Shown one piece after another: positions 7,528 to 63,420 of a stretch of 64,000 bases of DNA (its first letter is position 1; every line of letters starts with the position of its first letter). Source of the DNA: Phaeosaccion multiseriatum (taxonomy: Eukaryota; Protista; Ochrophyta, other classes); NCBI GenBank assembly GCA_965112735.1, contig OZ218958.1, positions 558,001-622,000 on the forward strand. Reading direction: 5' to 3'. The translations under genes were made by a program, and so were the position numbers. The notes under the pieces were generated by a model, which did no database searches, was not told the origin of the DNA, and saw only the letters and a list, made by a program, of their open reading frames with translations.

Positions 7528-10500
7528 TCAGGGGACAACAGTCTCGTCCGTCCAGCGCTTCAGCCTATTGTCCATGTGAGACACCCACTGTTTCTTCCAC
7601 GCTCCCCGTGTCGGCTCATCCCCGTCCTCCTCCTTCTCCACCACCACTACCGCCGGCGCCACGCCATCTTTCACTCCCTCTCCGCCCCCCCCCCCCCGTC
7701 CTCGTCCCTCTCCTCGTCCTCGTCCCTTTCCTCCTCCTGCTTCTCCCTCTCTTTCTGCTCGTCGTCCCCCAGCTCCTCCTGCTTCACTCTTGTTTTGCTT
7801 CAGAATCACCTCCAAGGACTTGATAGAAACCTCCTTCTGTATCACCAACTGCCGCTGCTGATTCAACGATACCTCCAGGCTCTTCACACGCTCGTCCAGC
7901 TCCGCGCAGCGGCTCCTGCACCAGTGACAGAGCATAGCGGAGGAGAGCACAGCACACCATAGCACAGTAGTGGTTAAGGGTGGAGCAGAAAGAGCAACTC
8001 TCTCAGTTGTCGCTCTTCACTGTTTCACTCTCTCTTTCCTCCCTCTTTGACCCCTGACGTGCTTCCTGCTACCGGCGGTATCCAGCGGCCAGTAGCAGTC
8101 CTGTAAAGCAATCGTCAGGGGTCGACCCTCTCTCCCCATCCATACGACAAGCTGTGGCTTCCTCACAAAGTCACCAAGTGGGGGTCTTACGTAAGTCACC
8201 AAGTCATTGAGGGCCTCACATCACTCACTTTGACAGCGCCAGGTCTCTCTCCGCCCTCTGAAGGTCCTTCTCGAGGTCTCTGCTGCTGCTCTGCTGCTGC
8301 AGCCGCTCCTACGCACACAGTAAGTCAAGGGGACAACAAAGCAGGTGGAAGCAGCAGGTGAAGGGTCAGGTCAGGAGGCAGGCGCGTGTTCCTTCTTCCC
8401 CACCGCAAGCTCCTGAGCTGCTTCTTCCCCTCCACACAGCCTACGCACCTGAGCCATCTGCAATTGCATCTGCAGCCTTTGGAGTAGAGGCATATGGGGA
8501 GGGGAGGACAAAAGTAAAAGTCGTTACAAGGTAATCATCGGCGGACTCCTCCAACACGCGCTCTCTCTCCGTCAGGCGGAGAGAGCCCTCTTGCTGGCAA
8601 ACGCCTCGACGCTCTCTCTCTCTCTCTCTTGTCTCTTCGTACCATGCTCCCGGGCACGAAAAGACGACCTTTTTAATTCTTATTAAGGCGATCCCTACCG
8701 TACGACAAGATCTCTATTATGACAAAGAGGCAACTCATGACCATTGCCATACTTTCGGTCCTCTTTGGACCCCAGGCTTGCTTGTGCCCTGCCCCCCCGC
8801 CTCATGCACGCAAGCAGGCACGCGCACGCACTCACTCACTTACGCCCGCACACGCGCACTCATCCACGCACACACCCACTCACACACACACGCACGCACG
8901 CACGCACGCACTCACTTGGCGAAGTGCCTCTCTTTGGCCTCCAGCTCGAGCTCCTTCTGCCGCACGCGCTGCTCCGAGGCCCGCAGCTTTGTCCGAAGGC
9001 GGCCCACCTCTTCGTCCTCAGCGGGCGTAGCACCAACTGCTCCTGCTGCTGCTCCTTCGGCTTCGGTTTTTGCTTTTGCCTTTGCCTGTGGTCGTTACCA
9101 GTGGGTCAAGAGGTTGAGAGGTAGGTAAGACAGTACACTGTCGATCGAGGGAGGGGGGGGGAGTGGTGACCAGGCCGTTGGCACTTCCACCACACGATTT
9201 GTGTGTCCACATCCGAGAAAGTCAGATGCTCCGCGAAGTTGCATTCCTCCTCCCCACCCCCCCACCGAGTCGTGCCACCTCTGCCCCCCACCGCTCCCAC
9301 CGCTCCCACCCCACAGGCCCTCCCATCTCAATGTCCAATTTCACCTTGGCGGCGAGCCGATGCCGTAGGCGCTCCTCCTGCCCCGCTTGTGCCTGGGCCA
9401 GCAGGACGTTGTACTGGCGTTCCATGCCCTCCAGCTGGCGGTGCAGGGACTCCTATAGTGGGGTGGGGTGGGGTTGGGTTGGTTGGTTGGTTGGTGGGTT
9501 GGCTTGGATCATGACTTTACTCACACATGGAGTAGTATAGTTACGAGCGAACGAGGCTTCTCGCGACGCCCTCTGTTCGATTTGGAGGGCAGTGACACGC
9601 GGCGAGTCGTCCACTGATTGACTTGCTCACTACTTGGGGCCATCTGTGACACACACCCGCCGAGCCTCCAACAGCCAAACATGTCCATACATGTTCCATG
9701 CATCCTTGTGCTCTCACCTTCTCTTCACGTTGCCTGCTCTCCTGCTCCTTGAGGCGTTGGGCTGCGCTCCGCACACTGCGGAGCCTCTCTGCGGCAGCAG
9801 AACGCACTTGCATCTGGAGTAGCTGGCACTCTCGATCCTTGCCATCTGTTGGGCGCGAAAAGGTGGACCGCAGGGGGGCAGGGGCAGGGGAAGGGTCAAG
9901 TGTTGTTTGTCGTCTTTTGGAGCAGGTCGCAGTCACACGGCACCATCCATTGTACGTGAAGTGGACCAAGAGGAAAAGGCAAAAGGGGGGAGGGGTCTCC
10001 TGCTGTCTTTGGGGCAATGCAACCAATGACGGGAGAGCACGCTGCCTCCCTGCCTCTTGGGCTGTTTGTGGTACATGTCATCACGCACCGAACTTCCTCC
10101 GCCACTCTTCCCTCACTTCCTCCAACGTCGCCTGCTGCTGCTCTTTCGCAGCCTTGAGCTTCTGAGCGGCGATTTCAGACGTCTTCTGACGGTCGCGCGC
10201 GGCCGAGCGTGCCTGAGAGGTGAGGAGGGGAGGAACATGACAATGGACAAGCCGGAAACGAGGCCCAGGGCGAGGGGAGAACCCGGTTCAGGCCAGCCGA
10301 GACAGAGATGAGACTGACAGAGCGGGGGAGAGGGTGTGTGTGTGGGAGAGAGCAGAAAAAGAGGGGGCATCATAAAAAGAACGCAATCCCTTACTTGCAT
10401 CAGCAGCGTCTCGTACTGCCTCTCCTTGGCGTCAAGCCGCAGCTGCATCTCGCCAAGCTTCTCCTGCCACCGATGCCCCCCCCCCTCCATCTCTTTCGAA

Positions 10501-10649
10501 GCATCAAGCTGCTGCTCCCTTCCTCTTCGTTCCGCCTCTGGCATTTCCGCGAAAGGGCTGTGTGGTTTTTGTTGAAGTGGCAAGTCCCGCTTCGACCCGC
10601 CATCTGTGAATTTGCTTTTCCATCCGATCCCATCCGCCCATTTACCCAT
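7528..10649 (-). CDS. Hypothetical coiled-coil protein, multi-exon
   Basis: Minus-strand exons 10649-10395, 10212-10089, 9845-9718, 9452-9345, 9085-8916, 8476-8449, 8308-8229 and 7915-7528 have GT/AG ends and splice in frame. The product is E/Q/R/K/L-rich and heptad-like (LGEMQLRLDAKERQYETLLMQ, RCAELDERVKSLEVSLNQQ). The start codon and the structure around 9100-9345 are uncertain. Confidence 0.7.
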
Positions 10650-10727
10650 GCAACGCGCAAAGCCCCTGTAGCAGCAGCAGCAGCAGCAGCAGAAGCAGCA
10701 GCAGAAGCAGAAGCAGCAGCAGCGGCC

Positions 10728-13700
10728 ATGGCCTTTATATCGTCAGTCGGGCGCCACGCCGCTCCTCCGCTCTCTCACCCGTTCCCTCATGCAGTGGCCT
10801 TCCACGCCGCTCCTCCCCTCTTTCGCCCTTTCCCTCATGCAGCAGAAGCGGTGGCACCAGCAGCGAAGTGTTATCTGGCGACGATGGCCACTCCCTTGTA
10901 CAAGGTGCGAAGCCTTCACCGCATGGCAGCTCTGGCTGCTGAAGTCGCGGGTGGGGAGGCTCTAGAGGAGACGACTGCTACCACAGTGATCGAAAGCCCC
11001 GCAGAGGAGATGAGGGGTGGGCGTGGCCGAGCAAAGAGGATGCAGGTATTGTCAATGGGCGGAGAGAAGGAGGCTGCGGTGGCCTTGTTAGAGGAGATGA
11101 AGAAGGAGAACGAGGGGCAGCCGATGGACCAACAGATCTATGGGTTCGCCATCCAGGCGTGCGTGCCCAGCAAGGACCTGGAGATGGCAGAGAAGCTGTA
11201 CCAGGAGGTATTGGACGCTGACATTGATCAGCGCGGGTCCAGCGATAAAGCCATGGGGAATGTGTACGGCGCGTGCGGGGAGACTGCCAAGGCTCGCGCT
11301 CTGACAGAGCGAATGAGGCGGGAGGGCATACGCATCGACTTGTTGGAATTCTGTAACGCTCTGGGGGTGGACACGGGGAAAGGGGAGGCGGACTTAGAGG
11401 CCATCGCGGAGTCCCTCGTGAAAGTGTTGGAGGACGCCAAGAAGGAGGGAGAGGGGGAGGGGGCCGACGTCATTGCTTACGACGGGGCCATTTGCGGCCT
11501 TTTGCAGGCGGGTAACAAGGCAGAGGAGTGTATGACGCTGCTCAATGAGATGGAGGAGAAGGGTATGGAGAGCAAGTGGTACGGAGGAGTCATTGCTGCG
11601 TACGGTAAGCAGGGCCTCAAGGACCAGGCGCTGGAGCTGCTGGCAAGGGTGGATGGCAAGCAGATACCCGAGGGCCAGGGCTACGCGATGCTGGTGCGTG
11701 CATTGGCGTCTTCGAACCACACGGCCGCGGCGCTGGAGGTCAAGGGGGAGGCGGAGGAGAGGGGTCTGACAATGGATAGAAACAACTACAACGGGCTTAT
11801 TAGGGCCACTTGCAGAGCAGGTGAGCATGGAGGGGACGGAGATAATAAGGGCCGAATGGAGGCACACAGAGCTACTCCTTTTGTGTTGTGTAACGGTAAC
11901 GGAGCTTTCTGTGACGGAGCTTTCTGTACTCACCTCTTGTTTACCGCGCTTTGCTTTGTCCTCCCTCTCTCCCTCCCTTCCTCCTCTCTCCCTCCTTCCC
12001 TCCTCTCTCCCTCTCTCCCTCTCTCCCTCCCTCCCTCCCTCCCTCCCTCCCTCCCTCCCTCTCACTTGTGTACTTCCCTTCCTGTTGTGCTCGTACCCAC
12101 GGCCTGCCCATATGCCTGTCTCCCAAGGTATGTTTTCCGAGGCCATGGAGCTATACGACGAAGCGCGTGCTCTGTATATCGCAGGAGACTTCGATGGAGA
12201 CGTCCCCAGACGGCCCTTACTGCAAGCGACGACAGCCAATCAATTGAAGAAGGCCCTCAGCGACGCGGGAGATCAGGATGCATTAGCGAGGCTTCTGGAG
12301 CGCCAAGACGAGGAGGGGCTCTCCAAGAACAAGAGAAGTGAGAAGAACAGGAAGGAGAAGATGAAGCAGAAGAGGAAGAAGAAGAAGGCGTTGAAGAAGA
12401 AGGTTCCAAAGGTACCAAAGATGGTGGTAGTGGACTCAAAGGAGCAGGTGGAGGAGGCCCCGTCGGAGGTCAACATGGAGAAGACAGAGGAGGAGGGGGC
12501 GGCTCTCCAGGCGGAGAGGATGAGGGCCTTGTCTGTCGGCGGAGAGAAGGAGGCTGCAGTGGCCTTGCTGGAGGAGATGAAGCAGGAGAGCGAGGGGAAG
12601 CCGCTAGACCATCGGCTCTACGGTTTCGCCATTCGAGCGTGCCTGCCCAGCAAGGATGTGGAGATGGCGGAGAAGCTCTACCAGGAGGTGTTGGACAATG
12701 GCATTGAGCCGCGTGGGTCGAGCTATAAAGCCATGGGCGACTTGTACGGCGCGTGCGGGGAGACTGCCAAGGCTCGCGCTCTGACAGAGCAAGCGTGGAA
12801 GGAGGACAGATTCATTGACGTTTTCGACTTCTGTAACGCTCTGGGGGTGGACAAGGGGGAGGGGCAGGCGGACTTTGATGCCATCGCGGAGTCCCTCGTG
12901 AAAGTGTTGGAGGACGCCAAGAAGGAGGGAGAGGGGGAGGGGGCCGACGTCATTGCTTACGACGGGGCCATCCGCGGCCTTTTACTGGCGGGCAACAAGG
13001 CTGAGGAGTGCATGGCGCTGCTCAATGAGATGGAGGAGAAGGGTATGGAGAGCAAGGCGTACGGAGGAGTCATTTCTGCGTACGGTAAGCAGGGCCTCAA
13101 GGACCAGGCGCTGGAGCTGCTGGCAAGGGTGGATGGCAAGCAGATACCCGAGGGCCAGGGCTACGCGATGCTGGTGCATGCATTGGCATATGGGCATCAC
13201 ACGACCGCGGCGCTGGAGGTCAAGGCAGAGGCGGAGGAAAGGGGTCTGACAATGGATAGAGGCAACTACAACGGGCTCATTAAGACTACTTCCAGAGCAG
13301 GTGAGCATGGAGGGGACGGAGATGAGAGGCATATGCAGATGGGCTACTAGGAGGCTTACGGATGGAGAGTGAGGGAGGACGGATTTGGGGGGGGGGGGGG
13401 GGCAGGGTAGGGGCACTACTTCTCCTGTGTTGTGAAAGGGAGCCCTCTCGCACATTGCTTCCTCCCTCCCTCCTCCCCTCCCTCCCTCCCTCCACTCTCT
13501 CTCACCTGGTGTCCTTCCTTTCCTTTGGGCGCGTAATCACCGCATGCCCATATGCCTGCCTATATGCCTGCCCGTATGCCTGCCCCCAAGGCATGGTTTC
13601 CAAGGCCATTGAGCTGTATGACGAGGTACATGCCCTTCACAAGGAAGGAAAGCTCCATGGAGATGCCCCCGGACGGCCCTTGCTGCAAGAACCGACAGCC

Positions 13701-14959: not shown

Positions 14960-15750
14960 AGACTCCTTTTATTAGTAGCAACCATTCCTTCATTTACATG
15001 GTATTTGGGCACGTGCCAAAGCCCCAAAGTCAAAGCGGAGAAGCTAGTTTTGAGAATCGATGCAGCAGTTGGTGATACAGGGTCGGAATCAGCAGAAAAG
15101 AGAAAACACGGGAGTAAACTTTGACCTTGGTTGGCCACCACAAACACCTGCAACTGCATGGCCTTCGTATCATCCGTGGGTGCGCTGGGGCAGCACGAAC
15201 CATCCCCCGAGATCGACAGTAGTGAAAAATGCCTTTAACATTTACACGAGTACAAGGTGTTGCTTCGGGCTGCGCCCTCGGCAGGGAGAAGGGGGAAGGA
15301 GAAGAGGGTTGGGGTGGGCAAGAAGTGAAATGGAGGAGGGAAAGGGGAGTGGGAGAAGGTGTGTATGTATGAGAAGGGAAGGAGGAGGAGAAATTGGAAG
15401 CATATGGCACGAAATGACGAGAACGACAAAACGACGGAGATAATAAAAGACGTGGTGATGGCGAGCTTACCTTTTTAATTGCTGCACACTTTGCTGTGTA
15501 AGCTGGGGGGCTTACTTGAACTATACACGAAAAGACGGTGTGGAGGCGGTCCGGAGGAAAAATTGTACAGTGTAGAGGTCGATAGAGGCACAAAAGTAGA
15601 GGCATATGGTTAGAGCGCTGAGCGTGCAGCATTTTCATATTTAGAGGCATATGGGATAACGAAGAAATCTTATATAGGTCTATCGTATGAGGCAGAGGCA
15701 TATGGTTTATGGTTTGGCTGGAAAAACATGATCATCACCTTTGTGCAAAC

Positions 15751-18054
15751 ATGGCCTTCATATCATCCGTCGGGCGCCACGCCGCTCCTCCACTCTTTCG
15801 GCCTTTCCCTCATGCAGCAGAGACGATGGCATCAGCAACGGGAGCACCAGCAGCGAGGTGCAAGGTGGCAACGATGGCCACTCCCTTGTACAAGGTGCGG
15901 GCTCTTCGCCGCATGTCAGCTCTGGCTGCTGAAGCCGCGGGTGGGGACGCAAAGATGGAGGCACCGAAAGAAGCAGTAGCCAAAGCAGCGGCAGTGATGG
16001 AAAACCCCGTTAAGAAGGAGGGGGGGGGGGAGAAGACGAAGAAGAAGAGGTCCGGGAAGAAGGTGGCACCAATAAAGAAGAAGGCGGCACCAAAGAAGAA
16101 AAAGAAGGCGGCACCAGCGGCCGACTCGAGGGAAACTCTGATTGCGAAAACGATGGCTCGCCTCAGCGTGTCCAGCGAATCGGTGGCTGCGCTGCTGGCC
16201 GACCTGAAGGAGAAAGACCCGGCCCTTCTGGTGCAGACGGTCACCAACATCCGCCAGCTGTTGCAGAAAGCGAAGGAGGAGGGCCTGGATATGGACATGG
16301 ATTTGCTGGTGGCCGCTTTTGAAGCCATCCGGAGGGACAAGTGGCAGGATCGGGCCTTTGTGCTGAGTCTCATGGAGGAGTCAAAGTTCAGCAAGGGCAG
16401 CCCCCCGCCCTGGAGCGTGTACTCCTCAACTCTGAGTGGGCTTTGTCCGCGCAGAGGACAGACCGTTAGGGCACTCGAGCTCCTGCAGCGCGCTGAGGTG
16501 ACATATCCCACTGAGATGGCCGAGACGAAGGTGGGTTTTATGTCGGAGATGATGAGAGCGCTGGGCTACGCTGGAGAGAAGGCGGCTGCGGTGGCCTTGC
16601 TGGCGGACATGATTAAGGAGAACGAGGGGCAGCCGGTGGACCAGAGGCTCTACGGGTTTGCTATACGGGCGTGCGTGCCCAGCAAGGACCTGGAGATGGG
16701 GGAGACGCTGTACGAGGAGGTGTTGAAGGCTGGCATTGAGCCGCATGTGGCGAGCGACAAAGCCATGGGCGACTTGTACGGAGCGTGCGGGGAGACTGCC
16801 AAAGCTCGCGCTATGACCGAAAAGAGGAGGAAGGAGGACCAATTCATTGACGTATTCGAGTTCTGCGATGCTCTGGGGGTGGACAAGGGGGAGGGGGAGG
16901 CGGACTTTGATGCCATCGCGGAGTCCCTCGTGAAAGTGTTGGAGGACGCCAAGAAGGAGGGAGAGGGGGAGGGGGCCGACGTCATTGCTTACGACGGGGC
17001 CATTTGCGGCCTTTTGCAGGCGGGCAACAAGGCTGAGGAGTGTATGACGCTGCTCAATGAGATGGAGGAGAAGGGTATGGAGAGCAAGTTGTACGGAGGA
17101 GTCATTGCTGCGTTCGGTAAGCAGGGCCTCAAGGACCAGGCGCTGGAGCTGCTGACAAGGGGAGAGAGCAAAAACGTCCCCACGGGCTCAGGCTTCCAAG
17201 GGGTGATCCAGGCACTGGCCTTTGGAGATCACACGACCGCGGCGCTGGAGGCCAAGGGAGAGGCAAAGGAGCGGGGCGTGGCACTGGATAGAGACTCGTA
17301 CAATGGGCTCATTAAGACCACGTGTAGAGTAGGTAAGCGAGAGAGGACTGGAGAGCGAGCGAGGAAGCGAGGGAGGGAGGGAGGGAGGGAGGGAGGGAAG
17401 CAGGGAGGCAGGGAGGCAGGAGGGAGATGGAGGCAGGCAGGGAGGATGGATTTGCCAGGGCAGGGGTAGGGACACTCGAGGAGCAGTGCAAGGGGGTGCT
17501 CTGCCCATTCAAACTCAAACTCCCTCCCTCCCTCTCACGTGCATACTTTCTTCCCTTTGTGCGCGCAACCACCGCCTGCCCATATGCCTGCCTCACAAGG
17601 TATGATTTCCGAGGCCATTGAAATATACAACGAGGCATACCGTCTCTACAAGGCTGGAAACCTCGACGGAGATGCCCCCGGCCGACCCTTCCTCCAGAGG
17701 AAGACATCCGTGCAGCTGGAGGAGGCCCTCAGCGCTGCAGGAGAGCACGCCGCCCTGGCCATGGTCCTAGACCATCAAGAGGAGGAGGGGCTCACCAAGC
17801 CAAACGTCGTGCAGTACTCGAAGTTGCTCGAGACTTTGGGTAAGGCCGGCGAGCACGAACGGGCGAGGGCGACGCTCAAGCGAATGGTGGAGCTGAAGTT
17901 GGCGACGAACGTGACTCGAAGTGTGGGACTCAAGGCGGCGGCGGTGGTGAAGTGGTGCTGCCCTCCGGGTAAGGAGGGGGATGAGAAGAAGGGGCTGAGC
18001 AAGTGCGATAGAGAGGTGAGGGGTATGCTTCAGGGTATCATGCCGTCGGAATGA
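15751..18054 (+). CDS. PPR protein, paralogue of the 10728 gene
   Basis: Same N-terminus (MAFISSVGRHAAPPLFRPFPHA). Exons 15751-17332 and 17600-18054. Clear PPR motif KPNVVQYSKLLETLGKAGEHERARATLKRMVELKL. Confidence 0.85.
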
Positions 18055-48168: not shown

Positions 48169-51100
48169 TCTGCTACTGCTACTGCTGCGGTGTCACCACC
48201 TGCTGCTGTATCACCAACTGCTGCTGCTGCAGCCCGAATGGCGAGATGGCGGCGACTTGCGGCAGCGATTACAAGGTAAGAAAAGAAGAGACCAGGACAG
48301 AGAGAAGAAAGACGAGAGGAATAAGACCACAGAAAAGAGTCATCATACCTTCCCCCTAGAGAAAAGAGTCATCATACCTCCCCCCCCCCCCTGATCCCTC
48401 TGAGACAGATCTGGCTGTATGACGGAAAGACAGGGAACCCAACCAAGCAGCTGTCACCCTCTTCCTCTGGCGACGACCATACCGGTAGTGTGTACTCCCT
48501 TGCCTGGACCGCTGACTCCTGCCGCCTCGCTACGGCCTCTGCTGACAAGACAGTCAAGCTCTGGGATGTGGTGGGGGGGGGAGTGCGTCTTCACGTGGAC
48601 CTTCGGCACCCAGGTGAGTTGAGTGAGTGGTTGGGTGGTTGGGTGGTGGGTGAGTGAGTGAGTGAGTGAGTGAGTGGGTGAGAGTGAGTGAGTGAGTGAG
48701 AAAGAGTGCGTGAGTGAGAGTGAGTGAGTGAGTGAGAGTGAGTGAGTGAGTGAGAAAGAGTTGCGTGAGTGGTTGAGCGACAAATACTTTTTCCTGCCCT
48801 GCCCTTGACCCACGCAATATTCCCTCACAGGTTGGCGACATGCAGGTGTCTGTGGCCTCTCTCAACGGCCTCGGAGGGTACGGCTTCGCCTCCGTGTCTC
48901 TGTCGGCCAACATCGATCTCCTCAAAGAAGGGGAGCCCAGCACACCCCCCTCCGCCACCGTGCAGGCACATCAAGTAAGTACGAGTACATGTAAGAGCTG
49001 GTGATACACAGAGGGAGAGAGAAAGAGGGAGGGAGAAGTGGGACACACAGACAGACGGAGGCAGGAGATTTGCATATCATTGACCTCCCCCTCCTCCTCC
49101 CCCTCTTAAGGTTTCCATCACCGCGCTTTGCCCGACGGTGGACCCTACGACGGGCTATTTCTTGTCGGGCTCCTTCGACGGGGTTGTGATTGCGTGGGAT
49201 CCTGCCTCCTTGAGAGGTTCGAGGCTCACCGCGCAGGTGCGAAGGGAGAGGAGGAAGAGGAGGAGGAGGTGGAGGAGGTGGAGGAGGTGGAGGAGGAGGT
49301 GGAAGAGGTGGAGGAGGAGGAGAGAGCAGAGAGGAGGGGGGAAGAGGAGGAGGAGGAGGAGGAGGAGGAGGAGGAGGAGGAGGAGGAGGAGGAGGAGGAG
49401 GAGGAGGAGGAGGAGGAAAAAGAAGAGCCACTTGCTATGGACTGTCCCGAGGGGTGTATTTCAACCCTCCACCCCCCCCCCCTCCCTCTCTCCCCAACCA
49501 GAGCGGCGGCTGGAGCAGCAGCAGGGCGGCGGTGTGCGGAGCAGCCCACACCAATAAAGTGTCAGGCATTGCCCTGTCCGCCGCCGGAGTGGTGTCTGTC
49601 GGGTGGGATGACATGGTCCGGGTCGGGTCTGTCTCCACGGGAGAGGGGGGCGCGTATGTGAGCTGTGCGGCCACGAACGGACAGCCTTGTGGCGTGTCGG
49701 CTAGCCCTGCCTCCAGTTTGGCGGCGGTGGTGAGTGGACGAAGGGAGTGGGAGGGAGAAAGGGAGGGAGGGAGGGAGGGAGGGAGGGAGGGAGGGAGGCA
49801 GGGAGGGAGGGAGGGAGGGAGGCAGGCAGGCAGGGAGGGAGGGAGGGAGGGAGGGAGGGGGGGAGGGGGGGAGGGAGAGAATGGATGAGGGAGTGAGTAG
49901 GTGATTTGGTTGAGAGAGGACGTGATTAAGTAACGTGAGGGAGTGAGTGAGAGAGTGAGTGATTGAGTGAGTGAGTGGATGAGTGGGTGAGTGGGTGAGT
50001 GAGTGAGTGAGTGAGTGATTGAGTGAGTGAGTGAGTGAGTGAGTGAGTGAGTGAGTGAGCGGGTGAGTGAGTGAGTGAGTGAGTGAGAGAGTGAGTGAGT
50101 GAGTGGATGAGTGAATGAGTGAGTGAGTGAGTGAGTGAGTGAGTGAGTGAAGGCGTGCGAAAGGTCAGGCCCTCATTTTTGTCTCTGTCTCTCCCCTCCT
50201 CGCTTCGACCTTGCCCCCCCCCACCGCCCTGTACAAGGGCATCATGCTGTTCCGCGACTCCTCCGTGTTGTTGGGCATGGAGGTAAGCTACACCCCAACC
50301 TGCATTGCTCTCCTTGGAGAGGAGGAGGTGGCGGTGGGTAGCAGTGACAACAAGATTCACATATACTCTCTCCAGAGCGATGGTCATGACCTCACGGAGA
50401 CGAAGGTGGTGGAGGGACATCGCGGAGCTATCAAGGTTTGTTGGGAGGGAGGGAGGGAGGGAGGGAGGGAGGAAGGGAGGGAGGGAGGGAGGGAGGGAGG
50501 GAGGGAGGGAGAGAGGCAGGGAGAGAGGGGAGGTAGGGAGGAGGGAGGGAGGAAGGAGGGAGGCAGGGGAGGGAGGGAGGAGGGAGGGAGGGAGAGAGGG
50601 AGGGAGGGAGGGAGAGAGGGAGGGAGGGAGGGAGGGAGAGAGGGAGGGAGGGAGGGAGGGAGGGAGGTAGGGGGTGAGGGAGGGAGGGAGGGAGGTAGGT
50701 AAGGGGTGAGAGAGGGAGGTGGGTAGTGCTTGTCATGGTTGGGGAGCGAGCCATCCATCCATCCATCCGCTGCCGTCCATCCATCCATCCTGCGTGTTTG
50801 GATGTATCTACCCCATTTTCCCTTCCAATCTCTCTCTTCTTCCCTCTCGCTCTCCCTGCCTCCCACCCTACAGCCCTGCCTGCCTGCCTGCGTGCCTATC
50901 TGCCCTCTGCTCGACCTCTGACCTCCCTCCTCCTCCTCCTCCTCCTCCCTCCTCCTCCTCCTCCTCCTCCTCCTCCTCCTCCTCCTCCTCCTCCTCCTCC
51001 TCCTCCTCCTCCTCCTCCTCCTCCTCCTCCTCCTCCTCCTCCTCCTCCTCCTCCTCCTCCTCCTCCTCCTCCTCCTCCTCCTCCTCCTCCTCCTCCTCCT

Positions 51101-51421
51101 CCTCCTCCTCCTCCTCCTCCTCCTCCTCCTCCTCCTCCTCCTCCTCCTCCTCCTCCTCCTCCTCCTCCTCCTCCTCCTCCTCCTCCTCCTCCTCCTCCTC
51201 CTCCTCCTCCTCCTCCTCCTCCTCCTCCTCCTCCTCCTCCTCCTCCTCCTCCTCCTCCTCCTCCTCCTCCTCCTCCTCCTCCTCCTCCTCCTCCTCCTCC
51301 TCCTCCTCCTCCTCCTCCTCCTCCTCCTCCTCCTCCTCCTCCTCCTCCTCCTCCTCCTCCTCCTCCTCCTCCTCCTCCTCCTCCTCCTCCCCTTCCTCCT
51401 CCTCCTCCTCCTCCTCCTCCT

Positions 51422-51452
<31 letters not shown>

Positions 51453-51987
51453 CTCCCTTCTCTTCCTCCTCCCCTCAGGCGCTGGCCTACTCCCCCGACG
51501 GCTCGCACTTGGCCGCAGGAGACGCCGCCAGGGAGTGTGTCGTGTGGGCGCGTGGAGGCTGGGAAGCGGTGGTGCAAGGACTTTGGCAGTTTCATACGAG
51601 CACCATCCTCACCGTCGCTTGGTCTCCGAGCGGGTATGTGTGTGCGTGCATGTGTACGTGTTGTTTGGCTTTTATTTTTACATGGGACTGACTGGGGCAG
51701 AAACCTCTTTCTTTCTCTCTCTCTCTCGCTCTCTCGCTGTTTCTTTCTCTCTCGCTCTTTCTTTCTTTCTTTCTTTCGTTGTTTCTTTCTTTCGTTCTTT
51801 CTTTATTCTTTGTTTGCCTCTTTCAAATCTTTCATGTCCCATGTACGCTGCTCCCTTGGCGGTTTGCCTTACCTCCGCTGCTGCTACTGCAAGCAGCTCT
51901 TCTTGCACGGCTACTACTACCTTTCCTTGGTACTGATGCCCCTTCTTTCTCCCCCCCTCCCCTCACACACACGCACATTCACTCACA

Positions 51988-52837: not shown

Positions 52838-55291
52838 CTAGACATCGACATCGCCATCTTCATCCTCCTCCTCCTCCTCCTCCTCCTCCTCCTCCTCCTC
52901 CTCCTCCTCCTCCTCCTCCTCCTCATCATCATCATCATCATCATCATCATCGTCATCAGCATCGTCGTCGTCGTCGTTGTCGTCCTCCTCATCATCATAA
53001 ATAGTAGGGCCATGGTACTTGACCTGAAGTCCCTCGGGACGATCTGCAGGCAGAGTACATCCCCGCCCAACCGTAAGCTTCCTCAGGCCAGCAGGCAGAT
53101 TCGCCAAATGGCAAGTGTATTTCCTTCCCAACTGTAGACTCCAGAGCGAAGCAGGCAGGGCCAGAGGGAGGTTAAAGTCCCGCCCCATCTCCACCTCCTC
53201 CACACCGCAAGGAAGGACCACGTGCTGATTGAAGTGCGAGTACCGGGCAAATGTGATCTTCTTCAGCGAAGCGGGGAGATCCAGAGGGAGATTAAAGTCC
53301 CGCCCCATCACCACCTCCTCCACACAGCAAGGAAGGACCACGTGCTGATTGAACCTTGCGCCAAATGTGATCTTCTTCAACGAAGCAGGCAGGGCCAAAG
53401 GGAGGTTAAAGTCCCACCCCATTTCCACCTCCTCCACACCGCAAGGAAGGACCACGTGTTGATCGAAGCAATTGCCAAATGTGATCTTCTTCAGCGAGGC
53501 AGGTAGGGCCAGAGGGAGGTTAAAGTCACGCCCCATGTGCACCTCCTCCACACCGCAAGGAAGGACCACGTGCTGATTGAAGCATTCGCCAAATGTGATC
53601 TTCTTCAGCGAAGCGGGCAGCTCCAGAGGGAGGTTAAAGTCCCTACCCATCTCCACATCCTCCACACCGCAAGGAAGGACCACGTGCTGATTGAAGAATA
53701 CGCCAAATGTGATCTTCTTCAGCGAAGCGGGCAGCTCCAGAGGGAGGTTAAAGAAATATCCCATCACCACCTCCTCCACACCGCAAGGAAGGACCACGTG
53801 TTGATTGAACCATTCGCCAAATGTGATCTTCTTCAGCGAGGTAGGCAGGTCCAGAGGGAGGTTAAAGCCCCCCCCCATCACCACCTCCTCCACACCGCAA
53901 GGAAGGACCAAGTGCTGATTGAATTCCGAGCTCCCGCTAAATCTGATCTTCTTCAGCGAGGCAGGCAGGTCCAGAGGGAGGTTAAAGTCACACCCCATCT
54001 CCACCTCCTCCACACCGCAAGGAAGGACCACGTGTTGATTAAACCTTTCGCCAAATGTGATCTTCTTCAGCGAGGTAGGCAGCTCCAGAGGGAGGTTAAA
54101 GCCCCCCCCCATCTCCACCTCCTCCACACCGCAAGGAAGGACCACGTGTTGATTGAACCTTGCGCCAAATGTGATCTTCTTCAGCGAGGTAGGCAGCTCC
54201 AGAGGGAGGTTAAAGTCCCACCCCATCTCCACCTCCTCCACACCGCAAGGAAGGACCAAGTGCTGATTGAATTCCGAGCTCCCGCTAAATCTGATCTTCT
54301 TCAGCGAGGCAGGCAGCTCCAGAGGGAGGTTAAAGTCCCACCCCATCTCCACCTCCTCCACACCGCAAGGAAGGACCACGTGTTGATTGAACCTTGAGCC
54401 AAATGTGATCTTCTTCAGCGAGGTAGGCAGGTCCAGAGGGAGGTTAAAGCCCCCCCCCATCTCCACCTCCTCCACACCACAAGGAAGGACAAAGTGCTGA
54501 TTGAACCTCCAGCCAAATGTGATCTTCTTCAGCGAGGCAGGCAGCTCCAAAGGGAGGTTGAAGTCCCACCCCATCTGCACCTCCTCCACACCGCAAGGAA
54601 GGACCACGTGCTGATTGAACCTTTCGCCAAATGTGATCTTCTTCAGCGAAGCTGGGAGATCCAAAGGGAGATTGAAGTCCCGCCCCATCTGCACCTCCTC
54701 CACGGTTCTTGGTAACGTGATGTTACCTTGGTTGAAACGGTCCGAGAAACACACACGCTTGACCGATGCCGGCAAAACCGCCAACGCCTTCGTGACCAGA
54801 GCATCGCCAGCAGAGGTCAGATCCAGAGCATGAAAGTAGCTCCTGCTGGGGCACAGGCGCACAGCGGCAATGCCGAACGTGCGTCTCGGTTTGCCTCCCC
54901 CCAGGCCTCCCACTCCCTCTCCGCTGCCAACGGCCCCCACCTCTGCCGCTAGAGATTGTGATAAACGAGTGTGTTTCTCCTCTTCCCGCTGCTGCCACCG
55001 GAGGAGACCGAGCATATGCTGTTGGACAGGGGCGGGCACAGCGGAATTTAGCACGAGAGTGCGTGATGTCACCTCGTCGAGGGCCCGGCTGACACCCCAA
55101 AGTTCCTTGCTCCGCAGTACGGTATCGAGAACACCCCAGGCCGCTACAGTCTGGCTCCTGCTGTCCCCAGCTTGGGCTCTGCACGCAGTAGAGGGACCAG
55201 CGGCGCTCTGCTGATGGGGACTGTGAGATATCATCCTCCCCGCCTCTCCCGCCTCTCCCTGCTGCCGGCACTCCTGAGCGCGGCGTTTCAT
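52838..55291 (-). CDS. Intronless FNIP-type (LRR-like) repeat protein, copy 1, 817 aa; 14 x 38-aa double repeats and an acidic tail
   Basis: Uninterrupted ORF with repeats FNQHVVLPCGVEEVxMGxx / FNLPLxLPASLKKITFGxx, matching the FNxxxxLPxxLxxLxFG pattern of FNIP repeats (here a 19-aa variant). Confidence 0.88.
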   Translation of the reverse strand: MKRRAQECRQQGEAGEAGRMISHSPHQQSAAGPSTACRAQAGDSRSQTVAAWGVLDTVLRSKELWGVSRALDEVTSRTLVLNSAVPAPVQQHMLGLLRWQQREEEKHTRLSQSLAAEVGAVGSGEGVGGLGGGKPRRTFGIAAVRLCPSRSYFHALDLTSAGDALVTKALAVLPASVKRVCFSDRFNQGNITLPRTVEEVQMGRDFNLPLDLPASLKKITFGERFNQHVVLPCGVEEVQMGWDFNLPLELPASLKKITFGWRFNQHFVLPCGVEEVEMGGGFNLPLDLPTSLKKITFGSRFNQHVVLPCGVEEVEMGWDFNLPLELPASLKKIRFSGSSEFNQHLVLPCGVEEVEMGWDFNLPLELPTSLKKITFGARFNQHVVLPCGVEEVEMGGGFNLPLELPTSLKKITFGERFNQHVVLPCGVEEVEMGCDFNLPLDLPASLKKIRFSGSSEFNQHLVLPCGVEEVVMGGGFNLPLDLPTSLKKITFGEWFNQHVVLPCGVEEVVMGYFFNLPLELPASLKKITFGVFFNQHVVLPCGVEDVEMGRDFNLPLELPASLKKITFGECFNQHVVLPCGVEEVHMGRDFNLPLALPASLKKITFGNCFDQHVVLPCGVEEVEMGWDFNLPLALPASLKKITFGARFNQHVVLPCCVEEVVMGRDFNLPLDLPASLKKITFARYSHFNQHVVLPCGVEEVEMGRDFNLPLALPASLWSLQLGRKYTCHLANLPAGLRKLTVGRGCTLPADRPEGLQVKYHGPTIYDDEEDDNDDDDDADDDDDDDDDDDEEEEEEEEEEEEEEEEEEEEDEDGDVDV

Positions 55292-55606
55292 TGCTCTTCC
55301 CTTTCGGGGGAAAGAAAAAAAGGCGGGGGCCCGGTACTGAGAGCGATGATAGCTGACAGCAGTCAGCGGCTGTAGAGGAGAAGTTGAGGTGCGGGAAGAT
55401 GGTTTAAGTCCTGCGTTTTCTCGTTCAAAGCTCCCTCACTGGATCCGTATTATCGCGAGCTTCACGAAGTAATTTTGTGATTATATTTGACACCCTTAAA
55501 GTGCCATCTATGGTTGTAAAAGTAACGCCTCAGCACCCCGTGATGATCCCGTGATCGAGGAGGGACGGCTGCAGCAGAAGCAGTAGCTGCTGAAAGGAGA
55601 GAGGAG

Positions 55607-55724
55607 GACGTGGAGCTAACATGTTTTAGAGCAAAAGAAGGAGCGTACAGACTTTGCCGAAGAAAGACGTGGAGCTAACATGTTTTAGAGGAAAAGAAGG
55701 AGAGTACAGACTTTGCCGAAGAAA
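55607..55724. repeat. 59-bp direct tandem repeat, 2 copies
   Basis: GACGTGGAGCTAACATGTTTTAGAG(C/G)AAAAGAAGGAG(C/A)GTACAGACTTTGCCGAAGAAA at 55607-55665 and 55666-55724. Confidence 0.9.
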
Positions 55725-56039
55725 GAGACAGGAACCTCGATGTCAACGCACTCACTCACTACGGCCAATCATGGCTTTGGCGGCGACTCCTCCTTTCAGG
55801 ATTTCAAGAAGTGGAAGGAGCTGGGGATGAACAAGAAGGAGGCGGAGACGGCACAGATCCTGTGCCCTCCCGCCGAAGTACGTGGTCAATGCGGAAGGGA
55901 GGGAGGTGCAGATTGTGGGTTTTTTGGGATTCGTGTGCCTCTCTCCGTCCATGCCGCTCCTCTCTATCTATGTATCTCTCCCTCCCTCTCCCTCCCTCTC
56001 CTTATGTCATCATGTTACATGTCCATTGTCCATGTCACA

Positions 56040-59717
<3,678 letters not shown>

Positions 59718-60698
59718 GGGACAAGAGACAGATGCGAGAGAGCAAGGCTGCTTGCTTACTGCACTCCAACGAGCAAGGAGGAGACAAGTAAAAGGGAGAG
59801 GGAGAGGGAGAGAGAGAGAGGGAGCAAGGCTAGTTGCTCACGGCACGGGCACTGGTGACACTGGGCAGCTGATGTGAGGTTCTGTCTGGAGTGGACGAGT
59901 TGGTGGTATGGTGGAGTGGATGGAGGAGCCTGTGATTTGCAGAGTGGGAGAGAGAAGAATGGAGGGAGGGATTGATGTGTAGTTTCTTTGACGACCTTCC
60001 TTCTATGTGTGTAGAGGGGGAGGGAGGGGTGTAAGGAGGCACTGCATGCCGCTTATTGCAGGAGTGGGGGCAAGGAAGGCCGCGCCACAGCTTGCTGGCG
60101 ATGAGGCTGGAGCGGGGAGGGAATGAGGAGAGGGGAAGGGAATGAGGTAAAACGAGAAGCAACAGAACTAACATCACATATTTATATATCAAAGGAAGCT
60201 CACTTGCGAAGCGTGGAAAGGAAAGTCGCCGCACTCTTGTGCCCAGTGGCGCGACTGCCCTTCTGCTCAGAGTCATCACAAGGCCCCATCATCGTATCGG
60301 GCGGTGCCATGCAGCTGCCGACACACACACACACTCTCTCTCTCTCGGGACAAGAATGGAGCATGATCCCCAGGCTGCCTTCAAAGAGAGATGACGTGTG
60401 ATGAGCGGCGAGAATGTTCCTTCCATCGCGCAGCGAGAGTGCGAGAGTGCGAGAGCCTGGAGGTGTAGGTACGCTCTCAGAGGCCCGGCAGCACCCCTCT
60501 CTCACTGCGATAGCGATGTCTGCAGTGGCCGTCCCACGGCAAGGCCCTTCGTCAAGTAGTGAATGGAGCGGGCATAGCTTCCGATGACTCGCCTCCAGCC
60601 ACGATGTCCACTGTGTGCTGCATGCCTCCCCCCCTCCTCTTTCCTCGGAGGAGCGCTGCGCTGTCCTAGCTACAAAGGCCACGTCTGTCTCTTAGAGC

Positions 60699-63233
60699 TC
60701 AATAATCGCCGGGTTCATCCTCGACCGCGTACTCGTGTATCAAAAGCCCCTCAGGTAGATGAACAGGCAGAGGATAGTTCTCACCAACGGTTAGCTCCAT
60801 GACGCCACTAGGCAGCGTCTCCATGGGGCAGGTGTTGTTCCGTCCAAGCTTGAGAATCTGGACCGAAGCAGGCAGGGCCAGGGGGAGGTTAAAGTCCCGC
60901 CCCATGTCCACCTCCTCCACACCGCAAGGAATGACCACGTGCTGATTGAACCGTGTGCTAAATGTGATCTTCTTCAGCGAAGCAGGTAGGGCCAAAGGAA
61001 GGTTAAAGTCATGCCCCATCTCCACCTCCTCCACACCGCAAGGAAGGACCACGTGCTGATTGAACCTTTCGCTAAATCTGATCTTCTTCAGCGAGGCAGG
61101 CAGCTCCAAAGGGAGGTTAAAGTCCCTACCCATCTGCACCTCCTCCACACCGCAAGGAATGACCACGTGCTGATTGAAACTTCCGCGAAATGTGATCTTC
61201 TTCAGCGAGGCAGGTAGGGCCAGAGGGAGGTTAAAGTCCCGCCCCATCTCCACCTCCTCCACACCGCAAGGAAGGACCACGTGCTGATTGAAGCTTTCGC
61301 CAAATCTGATCTTCCTCAGCGAGGCAGGCAGCTCCAAAGGGAGGTTAAAGTCCCTACCCATCACCAACTCCTCCACACCGCAAGGAATGACCACGTGCTG
61401 ATTGAAACTTCCGCGAAACGTCATCTTCTTCAGCGAGGCAGGTAGGACCAGAGGGAGGTTAAAGTCCCGCCCCATCTGCACCTCCTCCACACCGCAAGGA
61501 AGGACCACGTGCCGATTGAAGCTTTCGCCAAATGTGATCCTCTTCAGCGAAGCAGGGAGATCCAGAGGGAGGTTAAAGTCCCGCCCCATCTGCACCCCCT
61601 CCACACCGCAAGGAAGGACCACGTGCTGATTGAACTTCGAGAAGTCATCAAACTTGATCTTCTTCAGCGAAGCGGGGAGATCCAGAGGGAGGTTAAAGTC
61701 CCGCCCCATCTGCACCTCCTCCACACCGCAAGGAAGGACCACGTGCTGATTGAACCTTTCGCCAAATGTGATCTTCTTCAGCGAGGCAGGTACTAGGGCC
61801 AAAGGGAGGTTAAAGTTCCGCCCCATCCACACCTCCTCCACACCATCAGGAAGGACCACGTGCTGATTGAACCTTTCGCCAAATGTGACCTTCCTCAGCG
61901 AAGCGGGGAGATCCAGAGGGAGGTTAAAGTTCCGCCCCATCTGCACCTCCTCCACGCCGCAAGGAAGGACCACGTGCTGATTGAACCACGAGCCAAATGT
62001 GATCTTCTTCAGCGAGGCAGGCAGCTCCAAAGGGAGGTTAAAGTCCTGCCCCATCTGCACCTCCTCCACACCGCAAGGAAGGACCACGTGCTGATTGAAG
62101 TGCGAGTGCCCGACAAATGTGATCTTCTTCAGCGAGGCAGGCAGCTCCAAAGGGAGGTTAAAGTGATCCCCCATCACCACCTCCTCCACACCGCAAGGAA
62201 GGACCACGTGCTGATTGAACCTCCAGCCAAATGTGATCTTCTTCAGCGAGGCAGGCAGCTCCAAAGGGAGTCTAAAAGCCCAACCCATCTTCACCTCCTC
62301 CACACCGCAAGGAAGGACCACGTTCCGATTGAACCATTCGCCAAATGTGATCTTCTTCAGCGAAGCGGGGAGATCCAGAGGGAGGTCAAAGTTTTTCCCC
62401 ATCTCCACTTCCTCCACACCGCAAGGAAGGACCACGGGCTGATAGAACATTTCGCCAAATGTGATCTTCTTCAGCGAAGCGGGGAGACGCAAAGGGAAGT
62501 CGAAATCCCGCCCCATCTGCACCTCCTCCACACCGCAAGGAAGGACCACGCGCTGATTGAAGCTTTCGCCAAATGTGATCTTCTTCAGCGAGGCAGGCAG
62601 CTCCAGAGGGAGGTTGAAGACCCGCCCCATGTCCACCTCCTCCACGGTTCTTGGTAACGTGATGTTACCTTGGTTGAAATTGTCCGAGAAACACACACGC
62701 TTGACCGATGCCGGTAACAGCGCCAACGCCTTCGTGACCAGAGCTTCGTCAGCGGAGGCCAGATCGAGACCATGAAAGTAGCTCCTGCTGGGGCCCAGGC
62801 GCACAGCTGCAATGCCGAACGTGCGTCTCGGTTTGCCTACCCCCAGGCCTCCCTCTACCTCTCCGCTGCCAACAGCCCCCACCTCTGCCGCTAGAGATGG
62901 TGATGCACGAGTGTGTTTCTCCTCTTCCCGCTGCTGCCACCGGAGGAGACCAAGCATATGCTGTTGGACAGGGGCGGGCACAGCAGAATTTAGCACGAGA
63001 GTGCGTGATGTCACCTCGTCGAGGGCCCGGCTGACACCCCAAAGTTCCTTGCTCCGCAGGATGGTATCGAGAACACCCCAGGCCGCTACAGTCTGGTTCC
63101 TGCTGTCCCCAGCTTGGACGGTGCACGCAGTAGAGGGACCAGCGGCGCCCTGCTGCTGGGGACTGTGAGATATCATCCTCCCCGCCTCTCCCGCCTCTCC
63201 CTGTTGCCGGCACTCCTGAGCGCGGCGTTTCAT
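60699..63233 (-). CDS. Intronless FNIP-type repeat protein, copy 2, 844 aa; 16 double repeats
   Basis: Uninterrupted ORF. The N-terminal ~185 aa and ~190 bp of upstream DNA are nearly identical to copy 1, while the repeat order and C-terminal cap differ. Confidence 0.88.
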   Translation of the reverse strand: MKRRAQECRQQGEAGEAGRMISHSPQQQGAAGPSTACTVQAGDSRNQTVAAWGVLDTILRSKELWGVSRALDEVTSRTLVLNSAVPAPVQQHMLGLLRWQQREEEKHTRASPSLAAEVGAVGSGEVEGGLGVGKPRRTFGIAAVRLGPSRSYFHGLDLASADEALVTKALALLPASVKRVCFSDNFNQGNITLPRTVEEVDMGRVFNLPLELPASLKKITFGESFNQRVVLPCGVEEVQMGRDFDFPLRLPASLKKITFGEMFYQPVVLPCGVEEVEMGKNFDLPLDLPASLKKITFGEWFNRNVVLPCGVEEVKMGWAFRLPLELPASLKKITFGWRFNQHVVLPCGVEEVVMGDHFNLPLELPASLKKITFVGHSHFNQHVVLPCGVEEVQMGQDFNLPLELPASLKKITFGSWFNQHVVLPCGVEEVQMGRNFNLPLDLPASLRKVTFGERFNQHVVLPDGVEEVWMGRNFNLPLALVPASLKKITFGERFNQHVVLPCGVEEVQMGRDFNLPLDLPASLKKIKFDDFSKFNQHVVLPCGVEGVQMGRDFNLPLDLPASLKRITFGESFNRHVVLPCGVEEVQMGRDFNLPLVLPASLKKMTFRGSFNQHVVIPCGVEELVMGRDFNLPLELPASLRKIRFGESFNQHVVLPCGVEEVEMGRDFNLPLALPASLKKITFRGSFNQHVVIPCGVEEVQMGRDFNLPLELPASLKKIRFSERFNQHVVLPCGVEEVEMGHDFNLPLALPASLKKITFSTRFNQHVVIPCGVEEVDMGRDFNLPLALPASVQILKLGRNNTCPMETLPSGVMELTVGENYPLPVHLPEGLLIHEYAVEDEPGDY

Positions 63234-63420
63234 TGCTGTTCGCTTTCGGGGGAAAGAAAAAAAGGCGGGGGCCCGGTACTGAGAGCGATGATAGCTGACA
63301 GCACTCAGCGGCTGTAGAGGAGAAGTTGAGGTGCGGGAAGATGGCTCAAGTCCTGCGTATTCGCGTTCAAAGCTCCCTCACTGGATCCGTATTAACGCGA
63401 GCTTCCGAAGTAATTTTGTG

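Follow-up and report, generated by a model that had tools for sequence, protein, structure and literature searches.

Two paralogous genes in a window of 64,000 nucleotides (the whole stretch analysed here, positions 558,001 to 622,000 of contig OZ218958.1 of Phaeosaccion multiseriatum) probably are germline-encoded and belong to a large, lineage-specific family of predicted soluble, intracellular FGxxFN leucine-rich repeat (LRR) proteins that is diversifying on a putative binding face. The window is part of contig 9 (C9) of a eukaryotic assembly of 67 Mb in 22 contigs. Both genes carry a conserved N-terminal module, an array of 38-aa units and a capped 3′ part, which are arranged as follows.

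52838..55291, minus strand: gene 1, an intact, intronless open reading frame (ORF) for an 817-aa FNIP/FGxxFN LRR protein
54707..55291, minus strand: N-terminal module of gene 1 (residues 1-195), a ~55-aa orphan motif followed by a linker and N-cap repeats
53207..54706, minus strand: array of gene 1, 13 full 38-aa units (three of them 40 aa), equal to 26 half repeats of 19 aa
52838..53206, minus strand: 3′ part of gene 1, a degenerate cap unit, C-cap and acidic tail
55292..55479, minus strand: 5′ flank of gene 1, homologous to the gene 2 flank at 63234-63420
60699..63233, minus strand: gene 2, an intact, intronless ORF for an 844-aa paralogue of gene 1
62649..63233, minus strand: N-terminal module of gene 2, its protein 91% identical to the gene 1 module
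60924..62648, minus strand: array of gene 2, 15 full units, of which one has 39 aa and two have 40 aa
60699..60923, minus strand: 3′ part of gene 2, a degenerate cap unit and C-cap, without a long acidic tail

Both proteins matched the Pfam family FNIP (PF05725), with E 2e-82 (271.5 bits) for gene 1 and E 1e-88 (291.5 bits) for gene 2 at a cut-off of 21. Units were delimited by cutting the proteins at the recurrent GVEEV motif, which gave 13 full units and one degenerate C-terminal cap in gene 1 and 15 full units and one cap in gene 2. The original prediction had described nearly identical 114-bp units, 14 in one gene and 16 in the other, behind a near-identical N-terminus; both descriptions were borne out, the first with the caps counted and the second by the protein identity of the two modules. 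Tandem Repeats Finder (TRF) reported 114-bp arrays at 53145-54703 in gene 1 (13.5 copies, 87% matches) and at 60864-62645 in gene 2 (15.5 copies, 85% matches). Mean unit identity was 83% in gene 1 and 78% in gene 2 at the amino-acid level and 88% and 86% at the nucleotide level, with sub-blocks at 95-98%; in gene 1 nucleotide identity lay above amino-acid identity, which is one of the signs of selection discussed below. For fungal NOD-like receptors (NLRs), the criterion of high internal conservation is a repeat identity of at least 85% over at least 100 aa.

Each 38-aa unit consists of two 19-aa FGxxFN-type LRR half repeats, an A half (V-E-E-V-x-M-G-x-x-F-N-L-P-L-x-L-P-A-S) and a B half (L-K-K-I-T-F-G-x-x-F-N-Q-H-V-V-L-P-C-G). 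The FNIP consensus h-x-x-h-x-F-G-x-x-F-N...L/I-P-x-x (~22 residues) is present in both, but at a length of 19 residues and with MG for FG in half of the repeats. In phmmer alignments, the A and B halves matched the 22-aa CroV588 repeat (L-x-x-L-x-F-G-x-x-F-N-Q-x-I-x-E-N-V-L-P-x-x) in register, except that three residues following FNQxI are deleted. The 19-aa repeats, alternating between MG-x-x-FN and FG-x-x-FN, are shorter than those of CroV (22) and Megavirus baoshan (21) (PMC9525666), and half of the positions in one phenylalanine spine would be occupied by methionine. An AlphaFold2 (AF2) model of gene 1, built on an alignment of 26 paralogues, had a predicted local distance difference test score (pLDDT) of 85-95 across the repeats and showed one short strand per 19-residue half repeat (unit columns 4-6 and 23-25), indicating that position 5 of each half lies in a strand. 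The top Foldseek match of this model in the PDB was CroV588 (6nyr; E 1e-29, template modelling (TM) score 0.71, 33% identity over 644 columns), and CroV539 (7zal) was also matched. According to the model, the half repeats would build a curved solenoid resembling CroV588. Outside this genome, the best matches to the repeat region came from Durusdinium, Pylaiella, Dictyostelium and metagenomes and did not exceed 37% identity.

Variation was measured in the 28 units of genes 1 and 2 and then in 114 clean units from 11 paralogues, nine having been added whose N-termini were 86-93% identical. In the set of 28 units, entropy was 1.6-2.65 bits at alignment columns 6, 9, 10, 16, 27, 30 and 31 and did not exceed 0.8 bits elsewhere. 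In the set of 114 units, eight columns had 1.4-3.1 bits (1.85-3.1 bits for positions 8 and 9 of the two halves), and none of the remaining 30 exceeded 0.76 bits. The variable sites are positions 5, 8 and 9 of the A and B halves, together with the weaker A15 and B7. Every variant that had been listed for the residue after EEV, the residues after MG and after KITF, and the loops longer by 2 aa was found in the translations; two variable sites had gone without mention, namely A15 (D/E/A after LPL) and B5 (T/R/K, the T of KITF), as had the division of the unit into two 19-aa half repeats. All four combinations of A-half and B-half variants were seen. There were 100 distinct eight-residue signatures per 114 units, 11 of which recurred, in line with the earlier observation that variants recur within and between genes.

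Nei-Gojobori estimates, parsimony counts per column and nearest pairs placed amino-acid change at the variable sites above the neutral rate. Non-synonymous divergence (dN) by the Nei-Gojobori method was 0.60 at the variable codons, compared with a synonymous divergence (dS) of 0.195 at scaffold codons, and the ratio of the two rates (omega) on the scaffold was 0.22. Parsimony counts resembling single-likelihood ancestor counting (SLAC) were made on a single tree of 109 distinct units in a 38-column numbering. Columns 6, 9, 28 and 29 showed non-synonymous change at 3.3-4.5 times the neutral expectation, i.e. the scaffold silent rate (p<1e-11); for columns 10 and 25 the figure was about twice that expectation (p ~1e-3); columns 16 and 27, at 1.3-1.4 times, did not reach significance, and scaffold omega was 0.28. 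In 57 disjoint nearest-neighbour unit pairs, the ratio of the proportion of non-synonymous differences at variable sites (pN) to that of silent differences on the scaffold (pS) was 2.2 (95% confidence interval 1.8-2.8), rising to 2.65 at the four strongest sites. This design is conservative, because the variable sites dominate the distance by which the pairs were chosen. Furthermore, 22 unit pairs with identical 90-nt scaffolds, silent sites included, differed at up to 13 of the 24 bases in their variable codons. Purifying selection maintains the scaffold, which is also homogenised from unit to unit. At positions 5, 8 and 9 of the two halves, divergence outruns the silent rate, a pattern that is real and looks selected.

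In crystal structures, the concave surface has a single variable residue, that at position 5, and positions 8-9 stand on the edge of this surface (PMC9525666). By strand register and homology to CroV588, the selected sites of the present genes appear to line the concave face and its rim. A constant LRR scaffold with variation facing or bordering the concave surface, as had been proposed, is supported by the AF2 register, the phmmer alignment and the crystallographic paper.

Several points weigh against a selected binding face. Relative to the variable codons' own silent rate, omega was only 1.2-1.3. The variable sites were selected post hoc, after inspection of the data, and recombination between units breaks the single-tree assumption of the parsimony count and inflates the number of changes. 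Column 9 is dominated by a network of CGG, TGG, CGT, TGT and CAT codons, which CpG mutation could feed. The placement on one face was derived from the DSSP register of the model and from crystal-structure homology, and the N-terminal module was folded poorly in the AF2 model of gene 1 (pLDDT below 50 to 73). The low omega against the sites' own silent rate, the codon spectrum of column 9, which fits CpG transitions, and the failure of columns 16 and 27 to rise above neutral would all suit a history without adaptive diversification, in which unconstrained loop sites drift, concerted evolution acts elsewhere and CpG decay of arginine codons inflates the rate. Neutral sites should, however, match the scaffold silent rate, because conversion copies whole units, and four sites exceeded this rate several-fold, with a ratio above 1.8 in the disjoint pairs. 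Columns 6, 28 and 29 are not driven by CpG and include two- and three-base codon changes, and the pairs with identical scaffolds and strongly different variable codons likewise argue against neutrality. A purely neutral origin of the pattern is therefore regarded as improbable, and diversification on a putative binding face is retained as the preferred reading.

The arrays themselves are shaped by unequal crossing-over and conversion, with birth-and-death turnover of the genes. Among paralogues, the N-terminal 195 codons had a dS of 0.03-0.12 and an omega of 0.23-0.65 (gene 1 versus gene 2: dS 0.074, dN 0.048), and scaffold dS between units inside one gene was higher, at ~0.2, indicating that the unit types predate the gene copies. 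Positional orthology was restricted to unit 1 and to the units at the far end. For example, the copy at C9:1.03 Mb has units 11-13 that are 96-99% identical to the units of the same number in gene 1; for inner units, the best matches in other copies reached just 88-95%. A 3-unit higher-order block was recognised in gene 1, where units 3, 5 and 8 and units 4 and 7 have identical scaffolds, and TRF reported a higher-order period of 348 bp in the same array. Gene 2 contains a 2-unit duplication (units 11/13 and 12/14, 95-96% identical), and one broken paralogue carries a 3-unit block in triplicate. Repeat shuffling by unequal crossover or conversion, which the original prediction had put forward, is thus supported by higher-order repeats, block duplications and positional orthology confined to the array ends. 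The family is clustered and occupies at least 12 contigs; it includes ~11 close paralogues with 5 to 16 units, the degenerate cap unit counted, and in three of 11 the N-terminal region is interrupted by a stop or frameshift. One ORF fragment, likened by eye to the dimerisation region of a pyridine-nucleotide disulfide oxidoreductase, recurs in the flanks of two paralogues (C9:1054000-1058500 and C9:330000-333800), indicating that some gene copies travelled within larger segmental duplications.

Units that have the same scaffold but widely differing variable codons could also arise by programmed diversification, somatic or templated, in the manner of variable lymphocyte receptors (VLRs) or diversity-generating retroelements (DGRs), with paralogues or pseudogenes as donors, a role that the broken paralogues could fill. 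There was no sign of dedicated diversification machinery. Both genes are complete in the assembly and the next paralogues are more than 175 kb from the pair; VLR-like donor cassettes were looked for by tblastn, and no orphan repeat, N-terminal or cap fragment was found elsewhere in the 64-kb window. Silent change at the variable codons was only mildly raised in the disjoint pairs, and no reverse transcriptase or deaminase was noticed beside the genes in a scan covering the larger ORFs. Programmed diversification is accordingly scarcely credible, and germline diversification of the array units is preferred.

Within its own genome, the N-terminal module was matched at 185 places or more. Its core of ~55 aa is strongly conserved, with LWG..D..TSR (LWGV..D..TSR) invariant. 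No Pfam match was obtained with 24 members at E values up to 10, and no relative was found in a profile search of PDB sequences or in a word search. A HMMER profile of the module, run against 1.84 billion representative proteins, returned one match, an unrelated repetitive protein. When the module was modelled alone on a 40-paralogue alignment, AF2 gave a mean pLDDT of 54. The orphan motif may be a new adaptor or signalling module that links ~150-185 diversified FNIP-LRR sensors to one pathway, and would then belong to a non-NLR form of intracellular recognition in an alga with just five NB-ARC genes, although this is rather unlikely.

A different role for the module would be that of a degenerate F-box-like domain in substrate adaptors of ubiquitin ligases, the variable LRR face picking proteins for degradation. 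Such a function has been proposed for giant-virus proteins that combine F-box and FNIP, and the architecture is recurrent: it is reported for Megavirus baoshan (PMC9525666), P0008 consists of an F-box-like domain and FNIP, and 'F-box and FNIP repeat-containing protein L60' is the name given to a protein of Durusdinium. The spacing around LWGV..D..TSR is F-box-like, a likeness seen by eye only. No F-box match was found, however, by Pfam (24 members, E 10) or by the PDB profile search, hhalign against the F-box protein P0008 gave a probability of 0.2%, and AF2 predicted no three-helix bundle, at low confidence. An F-box identity of the module was consequently not adopted, and ubiquitin adaptors are a quite improbable explanation of the family, which is better regarded as FGxxFN LRR proteins with an orphan N-terminal module.

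The proteins are predicted to be soluble and intracellular, since no signal peptide, membrane segment or other hydrophobic stretch was found and the N-terminus is hydrophilic (maximum 19-aa Kyte-Doolittle value 1.33; judged by hydropathy only). Distant members at five loci, e.g. C9:3061700-3065400, begin with M-G-G-T-T-S-K or M-K-G-T-T-S-K, starts from which those of gene 1 and gene 2 differ. The M-G-G-T-T-S-K start fits the N-myristoylation pattern M-G-x-x-x-S/T, so that some members may be membrane-tethered. The C-terminal tail of gene 1 comprises ~60 aa, nearly all D or E (52841-53020), and is encoded by a TCC/TCA microsatellite at 52863-52963. The acidic tail is also present in the paralogues at C9:0.93 Mb and C9:1.03 Mb and is absent from gene 2 and the others; it may lengthen by slippage.

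In blastn comparison, the loci of gene 1 and gene 2 were 89% identical over 53145-55479 and 61090-63420, and no further homology was found in the flanks. The duplication that formed the pair comprised the gene and ~190 bp 5′ of the ATG, and nothing more. A 59-bp direct repeat in two copies, 96% identical, is located at 55607-55726, ~320 bp 5′ of the gene 1 start codon and just outside the 190-bp flank common to both genes. Microsatellites are numerous in the window. Very long, pure intergenic ones, (CCT)183, (CTA)97, (TGTC)145 and (GGGA)70, were observed at 50926-51476, 56964-57250, 58842-59422 and 50443-50719, respectively; several long intergenic "ORFs" around the genes are artefacts of microsatellites. 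Two PPR-repeat ORFs at 10308-12341 (677 aa) and 15709-17469 (586 aa), which are 3.4 kb apart on the same strand, are maybe local duplicates.

Giant viruses are rich in FNIP repeats, and the nearest solved structures come from CroV, so that the genes might derive from a giant-virus insertion instead of belonging to the host. The setting argues against this: G+C content is 55-65% and even along the window, and the neighbouring genes encode PPR, WD40 and TAZ-finger proteins. The presence of the family on many contigs, an N-terminal module that was found in no other source and the low identity (at most 37%) of the best outside matches also speak against a viral insertion, which is considered very improbable. 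The two genes are accordingly treated as cellular members of the family.

Under the explanation proposed here, pairs of 19-aa LRRs build a predicted solenoid whose scaffold is conserved and homogenised, and the strand residue on the concave face (position 5) and the two rim residues between FG or MG and FN (positions 8 and 9) are driven apart. Gain, loss and exchange of units produce the varied unit numbers and signatures. The concave face would bind a partner, the family would form a repertoire of binders with differing specificities, and the conserved N-terminal motif might couple these binders to a common partner.

Such binders could serve as an anti-pathogen repertoire, i.e. as intracellular sensors or decoys against viruses or oomycete-like parasites, with diversity kept by an arms race. 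Diversifying selection on a putative binding face and a large, clustered family with birth-and-death turnover are consistent with this, as is the same evolutionary mode in proposed immune genes, namely in fungal NLR repeats and in the Ectocarpus exons that encode LRR and TPR. The genome holds just five NB-ARC genes, all of the NB-ARC-TPR type, and no NACHT match at E≤1e-5. On the other hand, Pfam detected no signalling, death or nucleotide-binding domain in either gene, NB-ARC and NACHT included, the NB-ARC genes of this genome use TPR and not FNIP, and fast-evolving binders arise too in ubiquitin adaptors, gamete recognition and selfish elements. An anti-pathogen function is hence possible but unlikely. 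The naming of the proteins as receptors in the original prediction was likewise not supported, as a signal peptide, a membrane segment and any known signalling domain are lacking. The fusion of an FNIP array to NB-ARC or NACHT was ruled out as an architecture, in view of the TPR repeats of the NB-ARC genes and the lack of NACHT at the same threshold. NB-ARC-TPR genes with 10-15 TPR_10/TPR_12 repeats are located at C12:1.99-2.18 Mb and C9:1.89 Mb and have the architecture of the Ectocarpus candidate receptors.

Among known systems, the viral proteins CroV588 and CroV539 (6nyr, 7zal) share with the present genes the Pfam family, the FG-x-x-FN core, the LP ending, near-identical repeats and variability at positions 8-9 plus 5. 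Huyton et al. 2022 (PMC9525666) described that FGxxFN repeats within one protein can be almost identical, that variability peaks at positions 8-9, which border the concave binding face, and that species exploit this variability to evolve large families, which they likened to VLRs. The genes differ from CroV588 and CroV539 in their 19-residue repeats, shortened by the 3-residue deletion, in the alternation of MG and FG that creates a 38-aa super-unit, and in being cellular genes that carry an orphan module at the N-terminus and, in part of the family, a long acidic tail. With 5 to 16 units among the paralogues, closure into a ring cannot be a general feature.

In fungi, the WD, ANK and TPR repeats of NLRs are near-identical, shuffled and positively selected at a few positions of the binding face (Dyrka et al. 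2014; PMC4986451). The NWD/HET NLRs of Podospora resemble the present family in concerted evolution, shuffling within and between paralogues, few selected positions per repeat and variable repeat number, but have another repeat fold; neither NACHT or NB-ARC nor an N-terminal death or effector domain is present here. In Ectocarpus, ROCO-LRR and NB-ARC-TPR genes are candidate receptors in which LRR and TPR exons are positively selected (Zambounis et al. 2012; PMC3341825). Algal repeat modules, selected concave-face residues, clustering and birth-and-death evolution are common to both systems, although each Ectocarpus repeat is a shuffled exon joined to a GTPase or NB-ARC domain, whereas the arrays described here are single intronless ORFs without such a domain. 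With VLRs and transcription activator-like effectors (TALEs), the genes share a constant repeat scaffold on which specificity is set by few residues per repeat. VLRs, in contrast, are somatically assembled from flanking cassettes and are secreted or membrane-anchored, and neither cassettes nor a signal peptide were found here; TALEs bind DNA and have another fold.

The pattern of diversity has thus already been published for FGxxFN repeats, and no new diversity-generating mechanism is revealed. Specific to the present family are the 19+19 unit with alternating MG and FG, the orphan N-terminal module, the cellular host and the family size. If the proteins do form a repertoire of binders, they would constitute a natural library built on a very short LRR scaffold of 19 residues in which the specificity positions are defined, and a candidate route by which an alga poor in NLR-type genes could recognise numerous targets. 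The gene pair adds a well-quantified cellular example to a pattern known from viral and Dictyostelium FGxxFN proteins and from fungal NLR repeats.

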